A stretch of DNA of 64,000 nt from Paragordius varius (lineage: Eukaryota > Animalia > Nematomorpha). Location: positions 2,666,001 to 2,730,000 of the forward strand of contig OZ176058.1 in NCBI GenBank assembly GCA_964247055.1, written 5' to 3'. Positions 276 through 47,500 of this stretch are shown here, in pieces. How positions within the stretch are numbered: the stretch's first letter is position 1; each line of letters opens with the position of its first letter. The translations under genes were made by a program, and so were the position numbers. The notes below the pieces were generated by a model. That model had not been told where the DNA came from and did no database searches. It worked only from the letters and a program-made list of their open reading frames with translations.

Positions 276-2545
276 TCATATTTACAATATATTTTCTAAA
301 AAAATTCATCAGGATTATCATGGTGCGTTTGCTTTTGGTTTACTTAAAAAAATATTTCCATAGTAATTGCTCCATGTCAAAAATCCAATTTAGTCACATA
401 TAATGTTTTAGGATAAAGCTAAATGCTTATTTAAAAATATCAATAACCTACATGTAACATAATATTTTTAAAATTAATATAGTAATAGAATAGATAATAA
501 AACTTTTTAAAGGGGTTATTATATAACTAAAAATTATATATTCTAAATATATTTTCTGATGGGATAACGTATATAAAAATGTTTAAAGTTTTAAAAATCT
601 CTGTTAGCATGGATATATTTACTAATTAAAAGTATTTTAAGAAATATAATCAAAACTCTATAGTTTTTATGAAATTTTACGTATTTTGTTTATGTAAAAA
701 TTAGTCAAGAACATAACATCTACAATTGGAAACGGTTGTGAAAAAACAGTGCTTTTAGAAAATGCAACATGGATGGATTGTTATATACAGCCTGAATTTG
801 TGATTAAATTTGGATGTTATAAATAAATAATTTTTTAAATTTATCTATGGAATTCAGTGGAATTTTTCGACCGGACAAGTCTAATTTAAAAATACTCCAG
901 AAAATGAAATTATACATACAAAATGCAAAATCTAAAAAAATATTTACAAAAGGCAACCATATGTTTTAAAACCTTTCAAAAAGATATAAATTATGTTAAC
1001 GCCAATAATAACAGTTTACTCTAGGTAAATGTGTCTTTTAGTTTTCGCGTTTTAATATTTTCATTTTTAATCTTTACAGGTTACTTTTAAATGATAAAAC
1101 ACTGGTGAGGCTAAATAATACGGTGTTATAAATTCTTTACATTAATATATCCATTTTAATTTAGCATTTATTCAAATAGCTATTAAAATACATTATTACA
1201 TTAATAATAGCCCTTTTACATTTTAAATTTAGCTTGACGCCATTTTTTGTAAAATAATTTAAATAATATTGAAATATCTCTCTATGTTAATTCACCCATT
1301 TTTAATATATGTGATAGGTTGACTAGTTCAGGGACTTATTTGAATATTAATTAATGTCATTTAAAGTAACTTAAATTTAATAATAAAGCTGGATTTTTAA
1401 TATCTCAACAAAAGTTAAATTTTAAGTTTTAACACTTGGATACAACACATTCATTCTAGACCTTCAATTCAAATTGGGGTAGTTAAATACCCCAGACCTG
1501 TTTAAAATTATATTCTTAAAAAAATATGGAATGAATCGAAACCATGACAAAATTTTGCACTTATATAACATTAATAAACCGAAATATGTAAAAAAAAATT
1601 ATTTAAAAATACTTGATATTATTTATTTTAAGCTAAAACCGAAAGGTAAAAATTTGGTCAACGTGACATGTGTGCAATGGTAAATTTAAAAATAATACAA
1701 AATAAACCGCTTTTTCTATTTCTATCAATGTTAGATATAATTTAACTAAAAAATTAGCTTTAATTATGCCCTCAAAAGTAATTAAGACAGTATTTTGCAA
1801 AAATTTTGTAAAATAAAAATGGCGTCGAAGTAGTTTGACATAGAAAATTTTTTCAAAACAAAGTTTTATTTAGATATTTTGGAAAATTTATATAATTTTT
1901 ATAAGAATAGAAGAAATTTAAATTTGGACTGTTTCATTCAGTAATTTTTCGAAAATCCTAACCTAAATTTAGACTGATGTGAATTTAAGTCAGTAAGATA
2001 GTAAGACGGTAAGGCAGAAAGATAGTAAGACGGTAAGACAGTAAGATAGTAAGACGGTAAGCATAAGACAGTAAGATATTTGTATAAAAAACATACATTC
2101 GTGATAAGTCTGCTAATAGGAGACTTATCAAAATTTCAAAGTATTATAACTTGAAAAATATTGCATCTTTTTGAATTCTGTAAACTGGAGGATTGAAAGT
2201 CAGGTATCCTTTACAAATAATATATAGGGTTGAGTGAAAATGCGTAATTCTTTCGACACGAAACTGAGTTTACTAAACACCTCCAAAAATTGTATAAATC
2301 TTAAAAAATATATAAAAAATCTTGGGTATTATAGAAGAAAATGGCATCTATACCATTGTTTCTTATTTGGTAAATATTTTTTTTATATTTTTACAGTTTT
2401 AACAATTTTTTTTAAAAAAATTGTACTTCATGGTTCTGACAATAAAAAAAATAAATATAGCTAAATATTATTATAATAAATTTGAATTTTGTATTTTAAA
2501 ATCAGCTTTTAACCCGATAATAACCGTTTTCCCCTAAAATTTTAC

Positions 2546-2832
2546 ATGCAGAACGATATCAGATCCAGGGAAGTTTTGGTGGAATTACTTGAAAAGTAAA
2601 TTATTAATAAATATATAGATTTCCAATATTATATTCTAGAAAATCCAACAGTTTAGTTATGCACAAAGATCAATGGGATTTATTGTTTAGTGAATATATA
2701 ACAAAAGTTAATGATGGCCAGAACTTTAAACAGTTACAGAAGATGTTTACTAATATTAAATATACGATTAAAAAGAAGTTGCCAATCAATCGCACCAACG
2801 ATACATGGAATTTTATATTTTTCCGCCCATAA
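2546..2832 (+). pseudogene. Harbinger Myb/SANT-like DNA-binding protein, C-terminally truncated; exons 2546-2595 and 2619-~2783
   Basis: Removing GT..AG intron 2596-2618 gives MQNDIRSREVLVELLEKFPILYSRKSNSLVMHKDQWDLLFSEYITKVNDGQNFKQLQKMFTNIKYTIKKKL. This fits the Myb/SANT-like pattern (L.EL.EK..IL..K...K..W.........KQL.K...N.K...KK) of the Harbinger second ORF. After ~2783 it runs into antisense transposase sequence and stops at TAA 2830-2832. Confidence 0.8.
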
Positions 2833-3387
2833 TGCCTGAGATAATTCCATTTCCGATTGATTTTTGGGAAATCTTATCCACTTAGAACGTAGCCTACTAC
2901 AATAATAACTAACATAAGAAATAATTTTAGTTGCATAGCTACGTTCTATCCCAAAATCATTGGAAACCCCATATTGGAATCCTGGGTCGGCTAAATACCT
3001 CAAGAAAATTTCCACATATCCTTGGTAAGTTAAAGTACCTGTTTTTTTCTTAGGCCTCAAATTGACCGGAAATATTTCATCTGTAATGAACTTCACAGTC
3101 TCTGGGCTGAATCGAAGTAAAGTTTTATAATCTTCGGGGGCTATTGAACGTCTACTTTTTGATTTTTTAGTCTGTAATCTAAACATCACAATATGTATTA
3201 CTGTATATTATTATAAGTAGCGACTGAGGACGATTCGTTTGTTAACTGACTAAATAATTATTATAAAAATATACTTATTGTCTGGAAAATATGGAAGGGA
3301 TGATCTAAAAATTTTTAATTATTTATTAATAATTTACTTTTCAAGTAATTCCACCAAAACTTCCCTGGATCTGATATCGTTCTGCAT
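2734..3387 (-). pseudogene. Harbinger (HARBI1-like) DDE transposase, truncated just after the first catalytic Asp; predicted exons 3387-3338, 3304-3275, 3249-3202, 3178-~2783
   Basis: The ORF contains YKTLLRFSPETVKFI, FLRYLADPGFQYGVSNDFGI..S...KII, WIRFP and IPCIVGAID, which are hallmark PIF/Harbinger/IS5 transposase motifs. Homology ends at GAID (2785-2796). Three upstream GT..AG introns join it in frame to the TIR exon. Confidence 0.88.
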
Positions 3388-5899
3388 GTAAAATTTTAGG
3401 GGAAAACGGTTATTATCGGGTTAAAAGCTGATTTTAGAATACAAAATTCAAATTTATTATAATAATATTTAGCTATATTTATTTTTGTTATTGTCAGAAC
3501 CATGAAGTACAATTTTTTTAAAAAAAATTGTTAAAACTGTAAAAATATAAAAAAAATATTTACCAAATAAGAAACAATGGTATAGATGCCATTTTCTTCT
3601 ATAATACCCAAGATTTTTTATATATTTTTTAAGATTTATACAATTTTTGGAGGTGTTTAGTAAACTCAGTTTCGTGTCGAAAGAATTACGCATTTTCACT
3701 CAACCCTATATATTATTTGTAAAGGATACCTGACTTTCAATCCTCCAGTTTACAGAATTCAAAAAGATGCAATATTTTTCAAGTTATAATACTTTGAAAT
3801 TTTGATAAGTCTCCTATTAGCAGACTTATCACGAATGTATGTTTTTTATACAAATATCTTACTGTCTTATGCTTACTGTCTTACCGTCTTACTATCTTTC
3901 TGTCTTACCGTCTTACTATCTTACTGACTTAAATTCACATCAGTCTTAGTCTGGGGTATTCCCCAATTTTAATCGAAGTGTTAAATATATGATTTTGAAT
4001 ATATATAACTCTAATTTTTATTTTATTAGTTGTTATACATTTTTTAAAAATTTGGTAGCTTATACGTTTATTCCAGAACGAATTAAATAATTTATTGGCT
4101 TAAGTGGAAAGATGTTTAAATAGAATTTATAATAATTTTTTTTTGAAATACTTTGGTGCCATAAAAAGGTTACTAAATTATTTACTGCATGATTTTTTTA
4201 AAAAAATAAGGATATTTAGTAATTAAAGATTACAATAAAACGCCATCTCAATATTAAACATAATAAATATTTTTGGATACAATTTATATATATTAAAAAA
4301 AATTTAGGTAAGCCTTATAATATAATTTATAAAATTTATTGTAAATTGGATTAAATAAAATTTGGATAGCATTCCGGACAAAAAGAATACATATTTCTCG
4401 GGCGACAATCTATCCGACAATTTATTCCTTGTAGGGAATGTACTGGAAAGCCACAGTTATTATCGACTATTTTTTTATTAAATATAAAACATTAAAAATA
4501 GAAATACAGACGAAATGTTATAAAATTTAAAAAGCGGCCATATTTTTTACCTTGATTTTTATAAATATACCATAATTTACTGCAAAGTACGTGGGAGTAT
4601 CGATTATAGATTATGTGTGTAATCAATAATAGGAAAAATGTGTTTAAAAATGTATGGATTGTTGTGTTTAAAAAAAATTATGAAACGTTTTGTCTCTATA
4701 GTTTCAGTTTTAACATAAAAAAATCAAAAAATACTACATTGCTTTTAGAAAAAAAATTAACAAATTGAATAAAATGTCTAAATTTGTTGAATTACCGCAA
4801 AACCCAAGAATTATCATTGCTAACGGCCAAACCAATCTCCAAAAGCACTGTTCGAATTTGAAATTAAACATTTATATGTTATGATGAAAAACGAGATGTA
4901 TGTATAAAAAAAATTATAAAATGGTATTTTGTAGCAATTTTTATGCGTTCGTTCGACAAAGATTTATTTAAAATGACAAATGATGCGCGTATTTAACATT
5001 TTGTTACACATAAAATTTGACATCTATGTTTTTTTTTATTTAGATTTTAGTTTAAACTTTTTTGATAAATGGATTGGGGGAAATTTATTGGGTGAATAGA
5101 ATAGAAATCATTTCAAAATATTAAATTTAAAATTTTATATTATAATCTTGATAACAAATATTTTTTACGATAAAAAAAATGCCTGTTCTAAGAACTTTGA
5201 AAAAATTATTAGAAAATAATTAAGATTAACAGTTTTAGTAATATAAATGAATAAAGGGAAATAGGGCGTATTTGGCTCACAATTTATCTTAAACCATATT
5301 TCTAAATAATCAGAATTAAATTTAAAATTATACAAACAAAACGTAAAGGCTAAAGGCCATATATTTTTTATTTATATGAATACTTTTACCCTAATTTCTT
5401 CTCTATGAAATATTTTATTTAGAATTATAAATAGCACTAGCCAACAATTTCAAATTTAAAATTTATATCATTAAAGTTCATAAATAGTATATCTAAAAAA
5501 ATTATCTAACACCTCAGAATTATTTTTATCAGGGTTGATCGAAAATATTTGGCCCCGATATAACAATAAATTCGAAATTATTTTCAAAATGAAATGTTTT
5601 TATTTTATATTATTCAAAAGTGAAAAGATTAAATCTCATGAATGGTAGTAGGTCAATCTGATGTAATAGTAATTTGGCTTAATAGGGTCAAAATTTTCAA
5701 CCTATAAGTAATTGAAAATTTGTTGTTTGTAATAAATATATCCAATTCTCTATTAGTACTTTGCAGTTTAGACTGAGTTAATTATACCAAAATATTAATT
5801 TTAGTGGTCATGTTTTTTAATCTCTATATGTTTTTTGCTTTAAAATAAATGATGTAATCATAAGAAAAAACTTTTTAGTGTGTCATCTTCGTACATCTT

Positions 5900-7390: not shown

Positions 7391-7883
7391 AACTTTGATT
7401 CAAATTGAAGTATCCCCAGACAAAATTTAAATTAATATTTTTGAAAATCTACTGAAGGAAATGGTCCCAATAATTTATTCTTCTATCCTGATATTAGATA
7501 AATAAGCCAAAATATTTAAATAAAATTTAATGGTGAAAAAATGTCCATGCAGATTACTTTGACGCCATTTTTATTTTACAAAATCTTTGCATAATATCGT
7601 ATTCATTTAATTTTAAAGGTAAAATTAAAGCTATTTTTTAAATTACATCTAACATTTCTAGAAACAGAAAAAGTGGTATATTTATTATTTTTAAATATAG
7701 CCTATGCACACATACTTTGACCTTTTTACCTTTGGATTACACATCAAAATCAGAACATCAGGTATTTTTGAATAGGTTTTAATTCCTTCATATTTTTTAT
7801 ATATTTAATATTAAACAGGCCTGGGATATCCAACTACCCCAAGTAGAATCAAAGGACTGAAACGAATGTGTTGTATCCAAGTG
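7391..7883. mobile_element. Family A piggyBac-type MITE (opposite orientation)
   Basis: TTAA at 7387-7390 and 7884-7887; internal identity to the reverse complement of 1433-1971. Confidence 0.7.
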
Positions 7884-8949
7884 TTAAGATTTATAAAATA
7901 TAGTTGTCTTTTAAAAAAAATTGCCTTTTTGTTTTTACGTTTGTCTGTGTAAATAATTTCAATGTTTTGTGTGATAAATATTTTTTAATTAGATTTTACT
8001 TTTTTTCAGCATAATTTTTTAAAGAAAAATTTCGTATAGTTAAAGCGACATGGTCTGTAAAAACATTATTTTTCTGGGACATATTAAACACTTTATTAGT
8101 TTGATTGTGGAAGCATCACATTGAAATTATCGTTAAAAAAGTTTTAATAGTTACAGTGTAAATGCCGAATGCCTATAATTTAGATTAAACCCAAACCTAA
8201 TTGTAAAACAATAATTTTTATCCTGAAAGTATATTAGAGATTCGAATTATAATCATAGTATTTATTCTTTTATCCATTTTATTAGGGATGAAAAATTATA
8301 AATAATGGCGAATAAAAGGCAAAATGCATGATTTGGCCCAATATAAAAACTTTTGAATGTTATACTTAAAAATCTTTTTATAAAAATTAACTCAAAAGGT
8401 ATAGAAATATTTAATAATACAATAATATTTTGAATCATCATATAACCAAGATCTATCTTTACATAAACCATGTAAAAGCAATTACAACAATTGCCTTTGA
8501 GTTAAAGTAATTTCCCCATTTTTGTTTAAAAGCTCAAGATTTGATTGCAGTATTTAAATTTTATTATAATTAGCAAAAAATTATTTTTATGTCAATATGT
8601 TTTTCAAATATCTATATTTATAAATTTTTCTGATATTCTAGACTGAATTTTTAAAAAAAATTAACCAAGCCCTCCTCAAAATTTTGTCATCAATAAGTTT
8701 ACCATAATTAATAATAAAATATACTTAATATAATTGTGACTTATTTACTTTTTAAATATAAAAATTTTATCCAATATATTATTTGACAGCTGTTTTTAGG
8801 CTTTTGTTCCAAATGCAACATGTTCCCCTCATTTTTTTGAGTAGGTTTCTAACATTGGGACTATATTCCTACCCTAAAATGCAAAACATTAAAAAAATAA
8901 AAAAAAATTAGGATTAAAACCATTTTGATTCTATAAAATTTGACAAAAT

Positions 8950-30250: not shown

Positions 30251-31996
30251 AAGATTTCTCCTCGTTAAAAAATGTATCGAATTTCGAATTTTTAATTTTC
30301 TTCTATCTATAGAAAAAAGCAAGCCCTTGCTTTATAATTAATATCGTTTTTTTTGTTAAAAGACATATATGAAAATGTAATTGATATGTTTAAATTTAAA
30401 GGATATAAAGTGAGTTTTTTCACCAAATTTTTTATAGCAAGAAATATATTATTTTCAACTTTTTAAATTTAGCCTTTTTTTAGTTATCCAAAATTTAAAA
30501 ACTATAAATATAATATCTTTGATAACTTGTAATAAAATTAAAACAAATTTTTGGCGAAGAAACTCTTACTAAAATATGATTTAGAATGAAAACCATATTT
30601 TTCTCATATGTTTAATTATAATTAATCAACACCCCAAAAAATTTCTCCAATTTTTATAAAGGCATATTAAAACAGCTGTTTACCCATAATTTATATAGGG
30701 CGGTCATTTATCACCTGATTCTGCTGAATCAACTGACTCAAAACAATCAATCAGCAGCTGTCTTACCGCATCACATGACGAGTCACGTGACACGGAGAGA
30801 AACGAATCACATTACAACCACGTGTCTATACCAAACACCAATTATAATGCCCTGTTTGGGAGTAGTAATGATTCCTCTTTTTCTGGTTCTACCAGCAACA
30901 GTGACAATGAACAGAGCTATGTGCCACAAACAGCTGATACTGTGAACGAACTGTCTACAGCTGTTACGGACGAAAGTAATTTTTATGGTCTTCTTAGAAA
31001 GTTTAGGCTAGTATTGGTGTTTAATTGCGATATTTTTAGTTTTATTTTATATAAATGTATGAAATATAAAAATTTTGAATAATTACTTTCTTAAAATTAA
31101 TAATTGTATGATATAAATTACCGTACTGATATTATTGGGGGAACTTAAGAGAATAAACGATAATTCAAAGTTATTTTCTAAATTAAACAGTAAAATTTGA
31201 AAATATAAAGGCAAAACAAACTACTTTATACCCTTTATCTTTGATTATCGAGTTGTAGAAAGAAAAGTTCTTTCGCTCAATACATATTTTAATCATTTAG
31301 GTTCGAAAAATTCTCAATTTAATATTGCTTTTTAATAAACAGTTTGGTTTCAAAGTTTTTAATGATAAAATTTTTTTCTTTTATGCATGTTTACACTTTA
31401 TTTTCCAGAAGACAGAGTGGGGCATTCCGAATCAGATGAACATGACGTAAATATGACTCATTTTTTAACAGCCCATGAATTACATAATGGAAATGTAATG
31501 AACAAAACTGAATCCAAAACAGGTGATCTAAACCTTGGGCCAAGCCAAACTAATTTTGTCAACAATGGCATTGATCAGATTAAAACTGAAATGGAAGACG
31601 TAGTTTCCCAACATCTGAATTTAACCACTTGTTCTTCAACAACGACATCTAATTCGCCCTGCAATAATAACAATATTAATAATGGTGGGATGAATGGTAA
31701 ATCTACCTTTCATTGTGCCGAATGTGGTTTTGGTTTCACCACAAAATCGAATTGTGATAGACATATGAGGTAAAATCTCATATTTATTAATTAATCACCA
31801 TCAATAATTTCATAACTTACATTTTTTCCTCACAATTGAACAAAGTTTTGCTATGCGTGACTATAATAAGGGTTTCAGGGCAATTGGTCCCATTTTTGAC
31901 ATAATCAATCACATAAGATCAGTAAAAATTAAATAATGCTTCATTAGTGAGTTTATCAGGCTAAATAATACAAGTGGATTTCATTATTAATTTTTT

Positions 31997-32034
<38 letters not shown>

Positions 32035-35000
32035 AATTGTATGCGATCGTATTAATCTTTTGTCTAACTATATATTTGGGTAAAAATGACCATATATTGT
32101 GATCATATTCCATAATATTGATATTATACAAAACATACTTTTATAGAACAAAACACGGTTACCTACGGAGGAAAGATATGATTCAAAGTACGCAATATAT
32201 GGCATCTAATTTAACATTGCTTCCTACGTCCTCCATTACTACACCATCATCTAATAAGGAATGTCTCATTCCAAACCACGCGACAACAAAAGGGACAAAC
32301 ATTCTTTTACTCCCCCCTGTTTCAACCAACAATTTTACAGTGGCTTCTACAGCCACGAAAAAAATGGGTATCCAAACCCCAAAAACTACTGTGGCATTGC
32401 TGGCAAATAGTATGTTGCCATTACATTCAACAACGCCATTGTCCAATAAAGAAAAGGTGGTCATTAATGGCGAAAAACCAGTGACCCTTCCAATTAATTG
32501 CATCGTAAACTCTAATGGACTTTCTCCCCACCCACAATCTAACCTAGCCCCAAAATCGACAAATAAAAGAAAGGCGTGTAATGATTTAATCAAGTGCGTT
32601 AATTATTATTTTGATTAAATATTGTTTTATGTTAAGCAAAAATGTTATAAAAAATATGTTTAAACTTTTTAGTGAACTAAACCCTTTTATTGGTTAATGA
32701 AGGTCTTTTTAGTGGCAAATGTGTAAGTAAATGCATTAGCATATTTTTTGTTTAATTGAATTATGTGTTTATTTGCGAAAGAAAAGACTTATCTTAATTG
32801 CAATACCTATATACCATTAATATGACATGACTGTTTGTTTTTTACTAAATAAAATTTTTGAAAATATTTGCCGTATTAAATTATTAAACTAAATTATATA
32901 TAATATTTATGTTAGAGTACCAATTGGATGTTATACATCAGCCGTTTTAGCCCACATAACATCAATAACAACATCTTGTAGCGACAAATCTCTCGTTGTG
33001 AATAAAACAACTACCATTAACAATAATCAAAAAACATCAGGTGGTGCTTTAACTGTATTAAATGGGGGAACACACTCACTTGCGAACCACCTGACATTAC
33101 TAAACGATGGTGGAAAGGAAAATTATTTATCAAACCTAACGGAATTTAGTTGTAAACTTTGTCCAACAGGGATAGAAAATGGCCAGGCCAACATTGAGAG
33201 TTCGTGCGATTTAGATTCCATAATCCGACATATTGTGTTGGAGCACGAAAATGTAAGGATGCATTATTAATATACACTCCTCACTATTTTTATATTGGGG
33301 ATAATACCAAAGATAATCATTGCGCATGTTTTATTATTAAATGCAATCATGCCAAGAATGTAGAGCTTGAGCATATACATTTTTCGCATGCTTACTATGT
33401 AATAAAGCATACGTGATGCAACTTGAATATTTGAGTGCGCCGGGCGATATGAAATGGGATTTTTTTTGATCCCTATTTAGTTTTAATAAATCTAAAGCTA
33501 TACAGATTTTAAATAAAATATTTTACTACATTTAAATGTGTTAAAGTTTGAATGTTTTCTAACTATCTAATTAACATAATGCTTATGTAGTACATTTAAT
33601 TTATCCAATGATAGAGCATCACTCAATAGGCGACATTTTAATAAGTTAAATATATAAGAGTTAGGTAGTTTCTTTTTTATACGAAATTAAAAACATTTGA
33701 CCAGCTATTAATATTCATTTCGATGATAGGTGGAGAATATTCTTTCCCACATTGCTTTATCAAACAAAGGCTCACCACCACCCATTCAATCACCTAATGA
33801 CCCTATTATGGAACTAAAAAACCGATTGACCGATAAAATTATTCTACCACCACCATTTACAAATATGGAAAACGAAAATGTTTTTACCAAAGTTACACCA
33901 CAAAACAATGAGGATGACTACACTATAAAGAATGTAAGTTGGCGATTTTAAGATTTTTACATGGTAATTAGCATTATGCGCCGTTTTAATTAAGTGAGAT
34001 CTAAAAGGTTTGGAAGCTGGTATAATTTTTTTCGGTTTTTACGATAAAATTGTGCATAATACTTATCAATCTGCCCTGATACATTTACATATAGTACTTC
34101 TCTGTTAGTCCATATTGACCCATAATAAGATCAATAATGTAATCTAAAATTGGGTACTTATCGATGTTTTTTGTTAAAGTTGTTATATTAAATTAGCGAT
34201 TATTTATATTATATTTTTTCTTTAGGGTACCGATCTCACAAATAACATACGTCCATACCCTTTACCCCATAAGATAATGAGAAAAAAATTGTATCACAAT
34301 GTTTCTCAGCCCTCAAATACGGATCGTGATTATCAACATAGTAATAATAATAATATTGATTCATATAATGCAAAACATGATAACGGATTTACCAACGGTA
34401 CTGAATTGTTGACTCACAAAAGCCGCCCTATTACGCCTAAATCTAACGCGAACAATAGCAATGTCAACAAAAATAATATCAACGGACTAGGTGTTGATCC
34501 ATCTTTGGCAAGCTACTTTTTAACCTTTCTTCAACAACCTACTCTGGTAAATGGTCATCAGGAAGTTGTTGCTGCTAATAAAAATGATAAATCGTTTGCA
34601 ACGCAAATGGTGCCTACCTTTACAGCGTTTCAAACTTACATGGAATCATTACAAAAAGCTTGGAATATTGTACCTTCTTCCACGTCCCATGAGAATGAGA
34701 ATAACAGGGATAGTAATAAACACATCTCTGCTAATGAAATATCAGGAAACACGACCCCCATAACAGATATCAGTAATTTGACAACAACGGCCACAAATAA
34801 TAGCGTGCCTGAACCATTGTTGTTGTTAGAGAACACGGAGGATGAGGAGATGATGCCCCTTGTTATTAAAAGCGAATCCCAAGAAAATGATGAGGTTGAT
34901 GATCAAAATGATCAGGAGGAGGATTATAACGCAGACGTTAATACTCCACCACCCAGTAAAGCGACCGTGAATTACAAACGAATGTCCCAACAACAAGCCA

Positions 35001-37193
35001 TGGCAGGGAAGAACAGGTATAACTCGGTTATGTTGACAAATTACACACCACCGAGTCCCAATGCATCATCACAAATCACTGGAGGAGGAGATGGGATGGA
35101 AGAAATTACTTCTTATCACTCGGAACATGGTAACGAAGGCGGCAATGATGAAGAGCAGCAGCAATTACCACATGATGCGAATAATGCGATGAACAGTTTC
35201 GACAATAAAAATTACCATGCTAGGCTTCCTGGTGGATACTACAATAATACTGATGATGGTAATGGTATTCATGTTAACACTAAACTATCACAAGTGCCGC
35301 CGCCGTCGTCAACACCCTTTTTCGATCCAAGGGCCGTACCGTACCGAACACCCGGACCGAAAAAGTTTGTTTGCGTTTACTGCCAAAACACTTATTCGAG
35401 CCGGGGTAACGTTAATCGACACATACGGAACACGCATTTTAAAATGAAACGGAATGGTGTCGTTGGTATAGCCGCCACTGGTGGTAACAACATTACCAAT
35501 TACAATGATGATCAAGTTACCAATCTCTTGCAGTATTCTATTTTAAAACATAATAACAATAATAATTTTGATGGCGGGATGAATGAGGATGAAGGGGATG
35601 GTGGAGATGGAGAAGAAAACGTAAATGAAAGTATTCTTCAAGAAGCAGGGAACGATGAAAGCTGTGATGTGACGGCGTACATAACACCCCAAACCAATAC
35701 GCTGCTGAATGGCCAGTATTGTGCTGCCAACATAAAAAATGGAGGCGTTGATTTAGTAGCACAAAATGGTCATAATGGTATTACTGGGAACGGAGTTTAT
35801 GTCACCAGTAATAAACGGGCATCATCCAGCCTTAATCCGACACTGCAAAATTATACGAGATATATGAACGCTGCCAATCATCAACAACGAAACAGTTCTT
35901 CGGCACTCTCAAACACAGATGCTAGGAACGAAAGTTTTGCAAATAGCAATAATAATAATTCTGGTAATACCTCATCCCCGGCTTATCATAAACTAACGCC
36001 AGGTGGCCTATATAAAAATATGCCTGGGCCCGTGCCTATCCCGGCTTACATGCTGAGTTCCCTTAAGAATGCAACTACCCTCCCTCCCCACATAATAATG
36101 GAGGACGGTGGTGTTAATGGTTGTTGTAAGAGAGAAGAGTCATCTTTGCCATCCTCACATGATATGGATACAACACCCTTGCTTGATCCAAACTTAGTTT
36201 CAGCTTTTTATAAGAATAATAATAATAATACCGGGCATAGAGTAACAACAAAGTCCTCGTTGGCAGCCGCCAACCATGAAAATATGAATGGCAATGGCCA
36301 TCATAATTCATCAGCTAAGAATCATTCAAAAACCAAAAAAGTCGGAGTAGCACCAGGCAATAATCGTGAAAAATACCCAAAGGCTGTCACAGAGACTTCC
36401 TTGCCTTTACTTCAACCAAAGTTACAGCACAACAACGCAACACAACAACCAAATTATGCTAGCGTTATGGAAGACTACTATAAAAAATATATGGAAATGG
36501 TTATGGGTAAGAATTTTATTCTTTAACAAAATAAAATAAAATTTGGCTTCGTTTTACAGTAAAAATGAAATTGAAGCAAAATTTATAAGTTAAAAAATGA
36601 CTATTTTTATACTGAACCGACACGCTTACCTTATTTAGAAGGGAGAAATAGCGTATAAAGAAGCAAGCATTATTGAGTAAAGAAGGAATAGAGTTGTAAA
36701 TTGGCAAGCCAATTATAAAATTGGTAAGTATAATTTTAAAACTCTCTATATTAAATTTTATGATTTTCCCTCCATAACAAAATTAGTCTTTCTCCTGATG
36801 TCGTGAAATAATTTTATTTTTACCGTAAATGATTATATTTTGCCCATAGGTTGCTCATCCGAAGACAATAAAAACCAAAAACAAAATGGTCTGGATAATA
36901 ATCATAATAAAAATGGCATTAACAATAATACAAAAAACAACAACATAATTTCCAATCTCCCCTACGCTATGTTACAAGATTTTTATGCCCAATTTTTTAA
37001 TAAATCGACAACTGCTTCCAATCATATGAATAATATGGACCAGCAAAAAGACAATAATAGTCTAGAGTCTTCTGAAATGGAAAATAATAAAGAAAATATC
37101 TCGTCGAAAATTTCGCCACAAGAAACCCATATCTCCAACAGTCCTAAACATCATCACCACAATATTTCCTCCCAGCATATCGTGGAAGTATAA
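23213..37193 (+). CDS. C2H2 zinc-finger transcription factor (RREB1/hindsight-like fingers), 9 coding exons, ~1483 aa
   Basis: Exons 23213-23252, 23520-23680, 30699-30975, 31409-31769, 32147-32593, 32916-33252, 33730-33933, 34226-36506, 36850-37193. All introns are GT..AG, all phases match, and the total is 4452 nt (divisible by 3). Fingers: FHCAECGFGFTTKSNCDRHMR|TKH (split by intron 31770-32146) and FVCVYCQNTYSSRGNVNRHIRNTH. Linking exons 1-2 across the 7-kb intron is inferred from phase only. Confidence 0.8.
23520..23680 (+). CDS. ZnF gene exon 2 (DEDDKINNESAIF...ESFAAIN)
   Basis: TTTTAG acceptor, AAT|GTAAGT donor, open frame, N-rich composition like the other exons. Confidence 0.65.
24343..25440 (+). 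repeat. Tandem satellite, ~215-bp unit, 5 copies plus a partial sixth
   Basis: Unit starts (GAGCC..AGCAAATTTT) at 24343, 24553, 24779, 25000, 25208, 25424; two unit variants alternate. Confidence 0.9.
25829..26245 (+). repeat. Degenerate ~180-bp tandem repeat (about 2.3 units)
   Basis: AAATATTTAG.TT.GTTTTAACT recurs at ~25845, ~26018, ~26205. Confidence 0.6.
26670..26841. mobile_element. Family C MITE with (TA)n in its loop
   Basis: TA|CAGTAGCGTATG...CATACGCTG|TA. Confidence 0.75.
27393..27676. mobile_element. Family D MITE
   Basis: TATACCATTTACA...TGTAAATGG termini with subrepeats. Confidence 0.78.
28953..29260 (+). repeat. Local tandem duplication, ~155-bp unit x2
   Basis: TACCCTAAATGATTTTT...CCACAAAACAATTTCGATCA repeated at ~28953 and ~29107. 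Confidence 0.8.
29657..29940. mobile_element. Family D MITE
   Basis: Same TIR and subrepeat structure. Confidence 0.72.
30699..30975 (+). CDS. ZnF gene exon 3
   Basis: TATAG|GGC acceptor, GAAA|GTAATT donor; includes ORF 30822+. Confidence 0.8.
31409..31769 (+). CDS. ZnF gene exon 4 (first half of C2H2 finger 1)
   Basis: TTCCAG acceptor; CAECGFGFTTKSNCDRHMR; AG|GTAAAA donor. Confidence 0.9.
32147..32593 (+). CDS. ZnF gene exon 5
   Basis: TTATAG|A ACA AAA CAC completes the finger (RTKH). Donor AA|GTGCGT; alternative donor at 32578. Confidence 0.85.
32916..33252 (+). CDS. ZnF gene exon 6 (atypical CxxC...HxxxxH finger)
   Basis: Open frame including ORF 32998+; AAT|GTAAGG donor. Confidence 0.8.
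33730..33933 (+). CDS. ZnF gene exon 7
   Basis: GATAG|GTG acceptor, AAT|GTAAGT donor, phase 0/0. Confidence 0.85.
34226..36506 (+). CDS. ZnF gene exon 8 (N/Q/acidic low complexity plus C2H2 finger 2)
   Basis: CTTTAG|GGT acceptor, 2281-nt open frame, ATG G|GTAAGA donor; finger at ~35366-35437. Confidence 0.92.
36850..37193 (+). CDS. ZnF gene exon 9 (probable terminal exon)
   Basis: CCATAG|GT phase 1; stop TAA at 37191-37193. Confidence 0.8.
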
Positions 37194-44571: not shown

Positions 44572-47500
44572 CACTGTGCAACAAAATATGGGTTCAATTT
44601 TCTGAAGCTTATTTTCATAATATTTTCTGATTCCTTATGGTATTGTGATCAGATTTGGATAAAAAAATTATTTACTTACCCAGGTCGTTTTCGAGATATG
44701 GGACTTTTTCCATATTTGGACATATCCAAAATTTTCTCGTTTGTAAATCTTTTTCGCTAGGTAAACAAATAATATGTGGCTTATAACACAAATTTTATTA
44801 TAGACCACCAATTTATCTTTAAAATAAAAAAAAATTAACTCAAAATATTCAATACTTTTTGTTACAGGGGGCAAAAACCCTCAAAAACGGGGGAAGTTAA
44901 CATTTTTTGACACAAATATTTTTCATCATCTTATTAAATGAAAACACATTTTATTTTATGTTCTTGGATGTTAATAATTTTTTTTAATTATAAATATCAT
45001 TGTGTAATAGCTTTGTGGACTTTAATTTTTTTAAAAAAATTTAATTTTTACAGCTTTTTTGCTGTTTTTTATGTAAAAAATGATTTAATACAGCTGCATA
45101 TAATATATTCTTTATTTCATATGATATTTTTAATATTTCCCGCACCTAAATATACTCCATATTAGCTTTTTCATCAAAAATATGTTATTATATACCCAAA
45201 ATGTACAAAAAATATAATACCCAAGTATATAAATATTTATAAATTTAGGATAGATAAAAATATTGTTGGCCATATATGTGGACAATACACAAAAAAACTA
45301 AAACTACAAACATTACCACTTACATAAAAAACTATTTTTTTATATTATGGGGAACCTAGATTTGGGCCCCGCACACCAATGCAACACAAAGAAAAAGCGG
45401 CATAGGTGCATTGCGAACATTTTCTCAAAATTTTTAGGAAATTTAAAAATAAAAATTACCTGGAATTAGTTAATCGACTCTTTCTATAGGATGGTATGTA
45501 TGTTATAATATACATGCTATTTAAACATTTATATTCTTTTTTATCCAAAAATATAGGATGCCGCATGACTCCAAAGCTTCATATGGTGAATTCCCATTGT
45601 GTTTTTCTCAAAGGCGCCAACAGTAAGAGCCAGGGATCAATTTATAATCTTTCGACAAAACTATCGAAATAATATAAATTTAATTTGCGATTATATATAA
45701 TAAATAAATTATTTTATTTTACTTTCATTTAAAATCAAGATAGATTAGTGTCTTTTTGACCAAAATATACACTTTATTTAATATTCACTCAAATTAATTG
45801 AAGCATTAAATGAGGATTTGCGTATAATTCAATATATAATTCTCATTGTTGAAAGAGTTACACAGGGTTTTAATTGAGATGGAAGAGGCTTTTGACAGGA
45901 TTCCTGGATAATCTATTTGGTAAGTCTCCGTCGTAAAAAGGTCCCAGAAAGTAGTATCAAGTTGTTACATATAATGTACGAATCTCACACCCAGGATTAA
46001 AACTCCACAAGGTTTATCAGAGCCCTTTTCAATAAAGCACGGAGTCTACGAAGGTCGTCACTCAGCCCCTTATTGTTTATAATTTGTATGGACGAGATAG
46101 CCAAGGTCGTTAATGTATGCAAATGACATAATCATCTTGTCTGATTCATTGGCTGAGTTAAAGCGAACGGTAAACAGATGGGTCATTTTACTGAATCAAT
46201 ACGGTGTGAAAGTAAACAAAGCAAAAACCGAACTTATTACTTTTGGGGGTCAACTTGAAATGGAAGTAGTTGGCTGAAGGGTAAAGAAAGTTGCAAATAT
46301 TTGGGGGGTAAGTTAAGTTCGGTTGGATCGTTGACCGATGATATTAATTTAAAAATAAAGAGCAGTTGGATAAATTGGAAGAAAATTTCAAGCGTGTTAT
46401 GTGATCGAAATATTGATGTTAGAGTGAAAGGTAAGATATACAGTTCAGTTGTTCAACCCACAATGATGTATAATTCACAGACCGGTGTCAAAAAATCAGA
46501 AGAAAGACATTTCAACGTGACTTAAATGCTTAGAATGATGTGGGGGCAACAACAAAGTATAGAATTGAGAATAGATTTATTCGTAGGAGCACAGATGTTG
46601 AACCAATAGTGAAAAGAATGTCAAAAAATAGGGTACGTTGGTTTGGACACATTGAAAGGGGAGATTCTAATTATATTACAAAAATAATTGATTGTCATAT
46701 AGTTGAAGGAAAACGAGGACGTGGGCGGCCTAAATCGAAATGGGTGTACAGTAAAAAGAGTTAGCAGAATACGAGCTTAATGCAGAAGACGCCATAGCTA
46801 GACTACTATGGCGAGACAGGTTGTATAAAATGAGCGCTCTCACGAGTGAAAACATGTAATTTAATGCTTCAAATAATTAAAGTGAATATTAAATAAAGTG
46901 TATATTTTGGTCAAAAAGACACTAATCTATCTTGATTTTAAATGAAAGTAAAATCAAATAATAATTTATTTATTATATATATAATCGCAAATTAAATTTA
47001 TATTATTTCGATAGTTTTGTCGAAAGATTCAAAATTGATCCTTGGCTCTTACTGTTGGCGCCTTTGAGAAAAACACAATGGGAATTCACCATATGTAGCT
47101 TTGGAGTCATGCGGCATCCTATATTTTTGGATAAAAAAGAATATAAATGTTTAAATAGCATGTATATTATAACATACATACCATCCTATAGAAAGAGTCG
47201 ATTAACTAATTCCAGGTAACTTTTATTTTTAAATTTCCTAAAAATTTTGAGAAAATGTTCGCAATGCACCTATGCCGCTTTTCCTTTGGGTTGTATTGGT
47301 GTGCGGGGCCCAAATCTAGGTTCCCCATAATATAAAAAATAGTTTTTTATGTAAGTGGTAACGTTTGTAGTATTAGTTTTTTTGTGTATTGTCCACATAT
47401 ATGGCAAACAATATTTTTATCTATCCTAAATTTATAAATATATATATACTTGGGTATTATATTTTTTTTACATTTTGGGTATATAATAACATATTCTTGA

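Follow-up and report, generated by a model that had tools for sequence, protein, structure and literature searches.

Within the 64,000-nt stretch of Paragordius varius DNA analysed here (contig OZ176058.1, positions 2,666,001 to 2,730,000; called the window below), positions 1972-3945 are occupied by a transposon of 1,974 bp that we assign to the PIF/Harbinger superfamily. This copy is young, dead, non-autonomous and internally deleted, and has unusually long inverted ends. The best explanation for its organization, to which we give a probability of roughly 0.6, is that it is a deleted member of a family in which the end on the side of a Myb-like gene was duplicated onto the side of the transposase gene, and in which the transposase starts at its own ATG at 3186. 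As judged from the sequence, each arm probably contains the first coding exon of the Myb-like gene. An earlier, sequence-only reading of this stretch had proposed that the coding sequences of the Myb-like protein and of the transposase both begin with this same exon; that proposal is not supported.

The boundaries of the element and its target site duplication (TSD) are fixed by a paralogous empty site within the window: an inverted paralogue of the flanking repeat (~7400-7545) reads ...TAAATTT-TGTCTGGGG... uninterrupted across the insertion point. The TSD is TTA, present at 1969-1971 on the left and at 3946-3948 on the right, in agreement with the 3-bp TWA (TTA/TAA) duplication of PIF/Harbinger elements. 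Together with a minus-strand open reading frame (ORF) that is homologous to the N-terminal region preceding DDE_Tnp_4 in transposases, it supports the assignment to this superfamily and bears out the identity given by the sequence-only reading. The host sequence of the insertion is a copy of a dispersed repeat with at least four copies in the window. This AT-rich family flanks the element at 1420-1971 and 3949-4010, and has paralogues at 36-123, 7417-7896 (minus strand) and ~39085 (minus strand). Its summed contig depth is about 1e6 in sequencing run X1 and amounts to thousands in three runs labelled as other organisms, exceeding that of the Harbinger arms by a factor of hundreds; the family is probably a repeat of very high abundance, similar to satellites or to MITEs (miniature inverted-repeat transposable elements).

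The terminal inverted repeats (TIRs) of the element span 1972-2613 (642 nt, plus strand) and 3945-3320 (626 nt, minus strand), with 706 nt between them. In a global alignment they are 99.5% identical, the differences being three substitutions (2014, 2446 and 2496) and one 16-nt indel that corresponds to two units of an 8-bp subterminal repeat. From the outside inwards, the left arm contains: the terminus, an array of 11.6 copies of the 8-bp repeat (TAAGACAG; 1986-2076, plus strand), an AT-rich stretch of ~470 nt that precedes the Myb ATG, exon 1 of the Myb-like gene, its donor and 18 nt of intron. The right arm is an inverted copy of the same arrangement, with 9.6 copies of the 8-bp repeat (3857-3931, minus strand) and the copy of Myb exon 1 (3387-3338) with its donor. 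The two arrays near the termini are candidate binding sites for the Myb-like DNA-binding protein of the element. The exon-like sequence ATG CAG AAC ... GAA AA/GTAAAT points inward in both arms (2546-2595 on the plus strand, 3387-3338 on the minus strand) and the identity between the arms ends 18 nt beyond the donor GT; the arm alignment thus confirms what the sequence-only reading had noticed. Both the terminal 30-mer of the arm and the 56-nt exon-plus-donor string (ATG...GTAAAT) occur twice in the window, where none would be expected. The sequence-only reading had described arms of ~630 bp enclosing two genes: the arm length holds, whereas the interior contains only two 5' stumps.

These stumps are joined at 2782/2783, where both genes are cut, and the intact transposase and partner ORFs of an autonomous element are accordingly missing. 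The nature of this joint was evident from Logan contigs placed on window positions 1500-4400. They come from four runs, each with a different organism label, and 32 of more than 15,000 placed pieces are listed, together with a small part of their joints and loose ends. Two contigs match the window up to 2782 and then continue into unlike sequence (X6 record 23, 145 nt; X7 record 31, 152 nt), and in two others the match begins at 2783, after a stretch of unlike sequence (X1 record 7, 442 nt; X3 record 13, 197 nt). Since contigs leave the window exactly at 2782 or 2783, this position marks an internal deletion in the window copy, and longer copies exist. The contig X1 record 7 runs unbroken from 442 nt past the breakpoint to 3349, which is 30 nt into the right arm, and X3 record 15 likewise ends at 3349. 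A 31-mer assembly graph must branch at 3349 if both ends of the element carry the arm, and the longer copies in X1 and X3 therefore have the same junction between arm and spacer at 3320. The long arm with its exon copy is thus a feature of the family, a point in favour of the sequence-only reading; a one-off rearrangement of the window copy as the origin of the long arm was considered and rejected on the same grounds.

At the three substituted sites the contigs from other organisms carry the base of the right arm, so that the differences are private to the left arm of the window copy, which marks this copy as young; judging from these contigs, the arms are essentially identical within the family. 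The depth over the arms is several-fold higher than that over the transposase part. A full-length copy was not recovered by a protein word search with the transposase stump and the Myb product, nor by protein-guided and exact-DNA scans of metagenome contigs or by a scan of viral contigs. The element is near-identical in runs carrying five organism labels (among X1-X10; pieces 99.3-100% identical, 0.47-0.69 of the sampled words present) and occurs in part in a freshwater metagenome (0.14 of the sampled words). The unique right flank (4022-4400) is well covered in X1 only. The near-identity across organism labels would fit a recent horizontal spread or else organisms that are very closely related.

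On the minus strand, the stump at 2783-3186 comprises the N-terminal 134 codons of a PIF/Harbinger transposase, from a conserved ATG (3186) to the residues GAID. An exhaustive HMMER search with the ORF from this ATG retrieved 174 proteins at E ≤ 0.001, the best transposase homologues showing 37-47% identity over residues 1-134 (E down to 1e-17). The long homologues carry the DDE_Tnp_4 domain, which begins at their residues 134-176, and the alignment of the window transposase stops at residue 134 (GAID), where that domain begins; in four homologues (P0017, P0048, P0096 and P0140) position 1 of the DDE_Tnp_4 profile falls at the very end of the query. As the query ends where the domain of the homologues starts, the window copy is one without the catalytic domain. 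Past GAID the frame reads 16 codons of antisense Myb sequence and then a stop. A Pfam search with the transposase ORF alone gave no match. The minus-strand splice path that was said to lead into a DDE transposase consequently does not reach a DDE domain in this copy.

The start of the transposase at 3186 is indicated by the homologues. In a MAFFT alignment 30 of 37 begin at the column of Met 3186 and a further four have a Met there; they share an N-terminal motif M-A-x-F...R..K.Y..RR, which the window sequence MF-RLQTKKSKSRRS fits. At position -3 the right-arm ATG has a pyrimidine, whereas a G stands there in front of the ATG at 3186. Between the right arm and the transposase ATG lies a unique spacer of 133 nt (3187-3319, minus strand), which holds the mini-exons and short introns of the proposed splice path. 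The contigs of the nearest homologues (P0005, P0002, P0017 and P0048) are 1.2-1.8 kb long, too short to show TIRs. Two of the homologous transposases, both intronless (338 and 339 aa), lie on short contigs where the stop codon of the transposase is immediately followed by a small predicted gene on the other strand (L003:1675-1776 and L004:1393-1530, both minus strand), an arrangement that fits a convergent partner gene in related families.

On the plus strand, the coding sequence of the Myb-like gene probably begins with the exon at 2546-2595 (MQNDIRSREVLVELLEK), which is followed by its GTAAAT donor, a putative intron of 23 nt (2596-2618, GTAAAT...TATAG) and exon 2 (2619-2782), which ends at the deletion breakpoint after ...NIKYTIKKKL. 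The predicted spliced product, MQNDIRSREVLVELLEK continued as FPILYSRKSN...NIKYTIKKK, matches Myb_DNA-bind_5 at E = 0.049, its residues 8-70 aligning with positions 10-75 of the 78-position profile; the score of 14 bits is below the Pfam cut-off of 21.7. The match is seen only when exon 1 is joined to exon 2 over the 23-nt intron; Pfam searches with exon 2 alone, or with an alternative intron of 44 nt, gave no Myb match. A protein word search found no homologues of the Myb-like product, and a PDB sequence search and Atlas features were uninformative. The proposal that the TIR exon supplies part of a Myb domain is supported to the extent that this weak match depends on the exon. Read from the sequence, the plus-strand gene is probably, though weakly, Myb-like.

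We then consider whether the exon in the right arm could also be the first exon of the transposase. In-frame splice paths exist on both strands, as the sequence-only reading had described. When all GT..AG paths that lead from the arm exon to the frame of the transposase without a stop were enumerated exhaustively, there were exactly three, all of which end at acceptors at 3179 or 3172, downstream of the conserved Met. Because these acceptors lie past Met 3186, the conserved start is spliced out in every path, which speaks against the arm exon as a first coding exon of the transposase. The candidate introns (2596-2618, 3305-3337, 3250-3274 and 3179-3201) are all 23-33 nt long and of the form GTA..TAG. 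Such lengths are far under the usual arthropod minimum for introns. Left unspliced, the ATG of the right arm opens a 17-codon upstream ORF that is closed by a TAA inside the donor. The short GTA..TAG introns also prompted us to consider a transfer from a ciliate-type donor, which found no support: the genes use the standard code and the relatives found are ordinary DDE_Tnp_4 proteins.

In the explanation that we prefer, the two genes of full-length family members would converge, the Myb-like gene running inward from the left end and the DDE transposase gene from the right. In an ancestor of the family, an inverted duplicate of the terminal ~640 bp of the Myb side would have taken the place of the end on the transposase side, or lengthened it, and would have brought along the terminus, the 8-bp array, the region upstream of the Myb-like gene, exon 1 with its donor, and 18 nt of the intron. 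The process would amount to TIR extension via the recruitment of internal sequence. The Myb side is taken as the original context and the right arm as the derived copy, since the exon completes the domain match on the Myb side. A later deletion at 2782/2783 would have removed the 3' parts of both genes in the window copy. The transposase would be translated from its own conserved ATG at 3186, and the exon copy in the right arm would be a passenger, at most a segment of the 5' untranslated region (5'UTR) or a short upstream ORF. The upstream region within the arm would likely act as a promoter for the two genes alike, since the transposase ATG has no more than 133 nt of unique DNA in front of it and the family seems to have been active recently. 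An inverted repeat of 640 bp could also readily give rise to hairpin RNA and to internal deletions such as that of the window copy.

The alternative closest to the sequence-only reading is that the TIR is a functional module that provides both convergent genes with the same promoter, the same 5'UTR and the same N-terminal peptide of 17 residues, by way of three introns of 23-33 nt on the minus strand. If so, the two subunits of the transposition complex would be co-expressed and would share an N-terminal tag. The in-frame path on the minus strand, the junction retained in the longer copies and the plus-strand 23-nt intron, to which the Myb_DNA-bind_5 match lends weak backing, are all in its favour. 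The path by itself is not a rare feature: with GT..AG introns of 20-60 nt, one is found in 26% of mononucleotide and 64% of dinucleotide shuffles of the spacer. Moreover, the third intron would delete the initiator Met and the Phe that are common to at least 30 homologous transposases, the 42 residues that the path adds have no family match, and half a Myb helix has no evident function on a transposase. The host introns in the window measure ~340-375 nt (31771-32146, 36508-36849), and none of the sampled words of the element occurs in the listed RNA runs of organism A. We consider this module improbable, and its stronger form, in which the 640-bp TIR was selected as a bidirectional unit whose 17-codon exon is spliced via the 23-33-nt introns onto both proteins, slightly more so. 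Several points nevertheless weigh against our preferred explanation. Under a strict rule of GTA..TAG introns of 20-35 nt, to which all four proposed introns conform, a path is found in just 12 of 1,000 dinucleotide shuffles (1.2%), and the spacer may thus be shaped for splicing; the rule was derived post hoc from the candidate introns themselves and we treat the figure as a caution, not as support. The start sites of the homologues come from ORF callers, which are blind to upstream exons, and both the start site and the splicing were judged from DNA alone. Finally, the convergent layout, the complete right arm and the intact DDE domain of copies with long TIRs are deduced from contig fragments.

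A different possibility, which we regard as unlikely though clearly less so than a shared exon, is that the long arm arose as an accident of structure, either neutral or harmful. The arm would then not be a promoter of the transposase, which would be transcribed from the 133-nt spacer or by read-through, and the inverted repeat would mainly make hairpin RNA or DNA, attracting silencing by small RNAs and promoting internal deletions. The window copy has itself lost internal sequence between its arms, and the excess depth of the arms over the transposase part would fit many deleted or MITE-like derivatives; the TIR recruitment in the Galileo element has likewise been described as structural dynamics and not as adaptation (PMC4168063). 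However, the 133 nt between arm and ATG leave little room for an independent promoter, and the X1 contig over the 5' region of the transposase shows no alternative upstream branch. In addition, the near-identical copies and the intact TSD make the family look recently active, and the transposase of some long-armed copy is thus probably expressed.

Two further features of the window were observed. At 31387-37193 (plus strand) lies a host gene that encodes a C2H2 zinc-finger protein, large and rich in Asn. Its Atlas features lead to zinc-finger clusters of arthropods and chordates (e.g. ras-responsive element-binding protein), which taken by themselves would indicate an AT-rich animal host, probably an arthropod. 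At 46113-46764 (plus strand) it contains ORF fragments that, as read from their translations, resemble a retrotransposon without long terminal repeats; they are flanked by inverted, near-identical ORFs of 58 aa that differ by one residue (45496-45672, plus strand; 47003-47179, minus strand).

PIF/Harbinger elements are DNA transposons with two genes, one for a DDE_Tnp_4 (IS5-like) transposase and one for a partner protein of the Myb/SANT or MADF type. The element shares with them the TTA TSD, the TIRs and the DDE_Tnp_4-related N-terminus of its transposase, and probably also a Myb-like second gene, whose match to Myb_DNA-bind_5 is weak. The mobilization of these elements needs two proteins (PMC2836001). 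It differs in that its TIRs are ~640 bp long and contain the 5' end of the partner gene, and in that the catalytic domain is gone. Classical plant PIF/Harbinger TIRs measure 14-25 bp (PMC2213677). The statement in the sequence-only reading that Harbinger TIRs are normally short was too strong: their length is described as highly variable, and the TIRs of Turmoil1 and Turmoil2 of C. elegans as unusually extended and composite (PMC13668399). Long TIRs alone are thus not new in this superfamily. The likeness to the two Turmoil elements, which belong to the same superfamily and have strongly extended TIRs, is drawn from their description. In the literature we found no statement of a coding exon of the MADF gene in the Turmoil TIRs, and no description of a Harbinger TIR that includes the upstream region and the first coding exon of the partner gene. 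Among transposon annotations the case is of practical value, as Harbingers with long TIRs are easily misclassified as foldback elements.

The way in which the arm would have grown is best compared with Galileo, a Drosophila element of the P superfamily, in which a piece of the element's own ORF lies in one TIR and is repeated in inverted orientation at the other end: 69 bp to more than 500 bp of the transposase ORF are present in both TIRs (PMC4168063). Here, both arms contain exon 1 of the Myb-like gene together with its donor and 18 nt of intron, with the same junction in the longer copies, which extends to PIF/Harbinger a growth of TIRs by swallowing own coding sequence that has so far been described for Galileo. 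Unlike Galileo, which recruits the 3' end of its transposase ORF, the window element would have recruited the 5' end of the partner gene with its upstream region, and the copy consequently faces the second gene in a promoter-like orientation. The closest functional analogue of a shared promoter is MuDR of maize, which belongs to another superfamily (Mutator, with a TSD of 9 bp) and has two convergent genes with promoters in the TIRs. Its TIRs (~215 bp) hold the promoters and start sites of mudrA and mudrB, with no shared coding exon mentioned, and their promoter activity is experimental, whereas that of the window element is inferred (PMC3440606). If the arm indeed drives both genes, the family would be to animal Harbingers what MuDR is to maize transposons, a case in which a two-protein transposon solved the co-expression of its subunits by copying one promoter to the other end.

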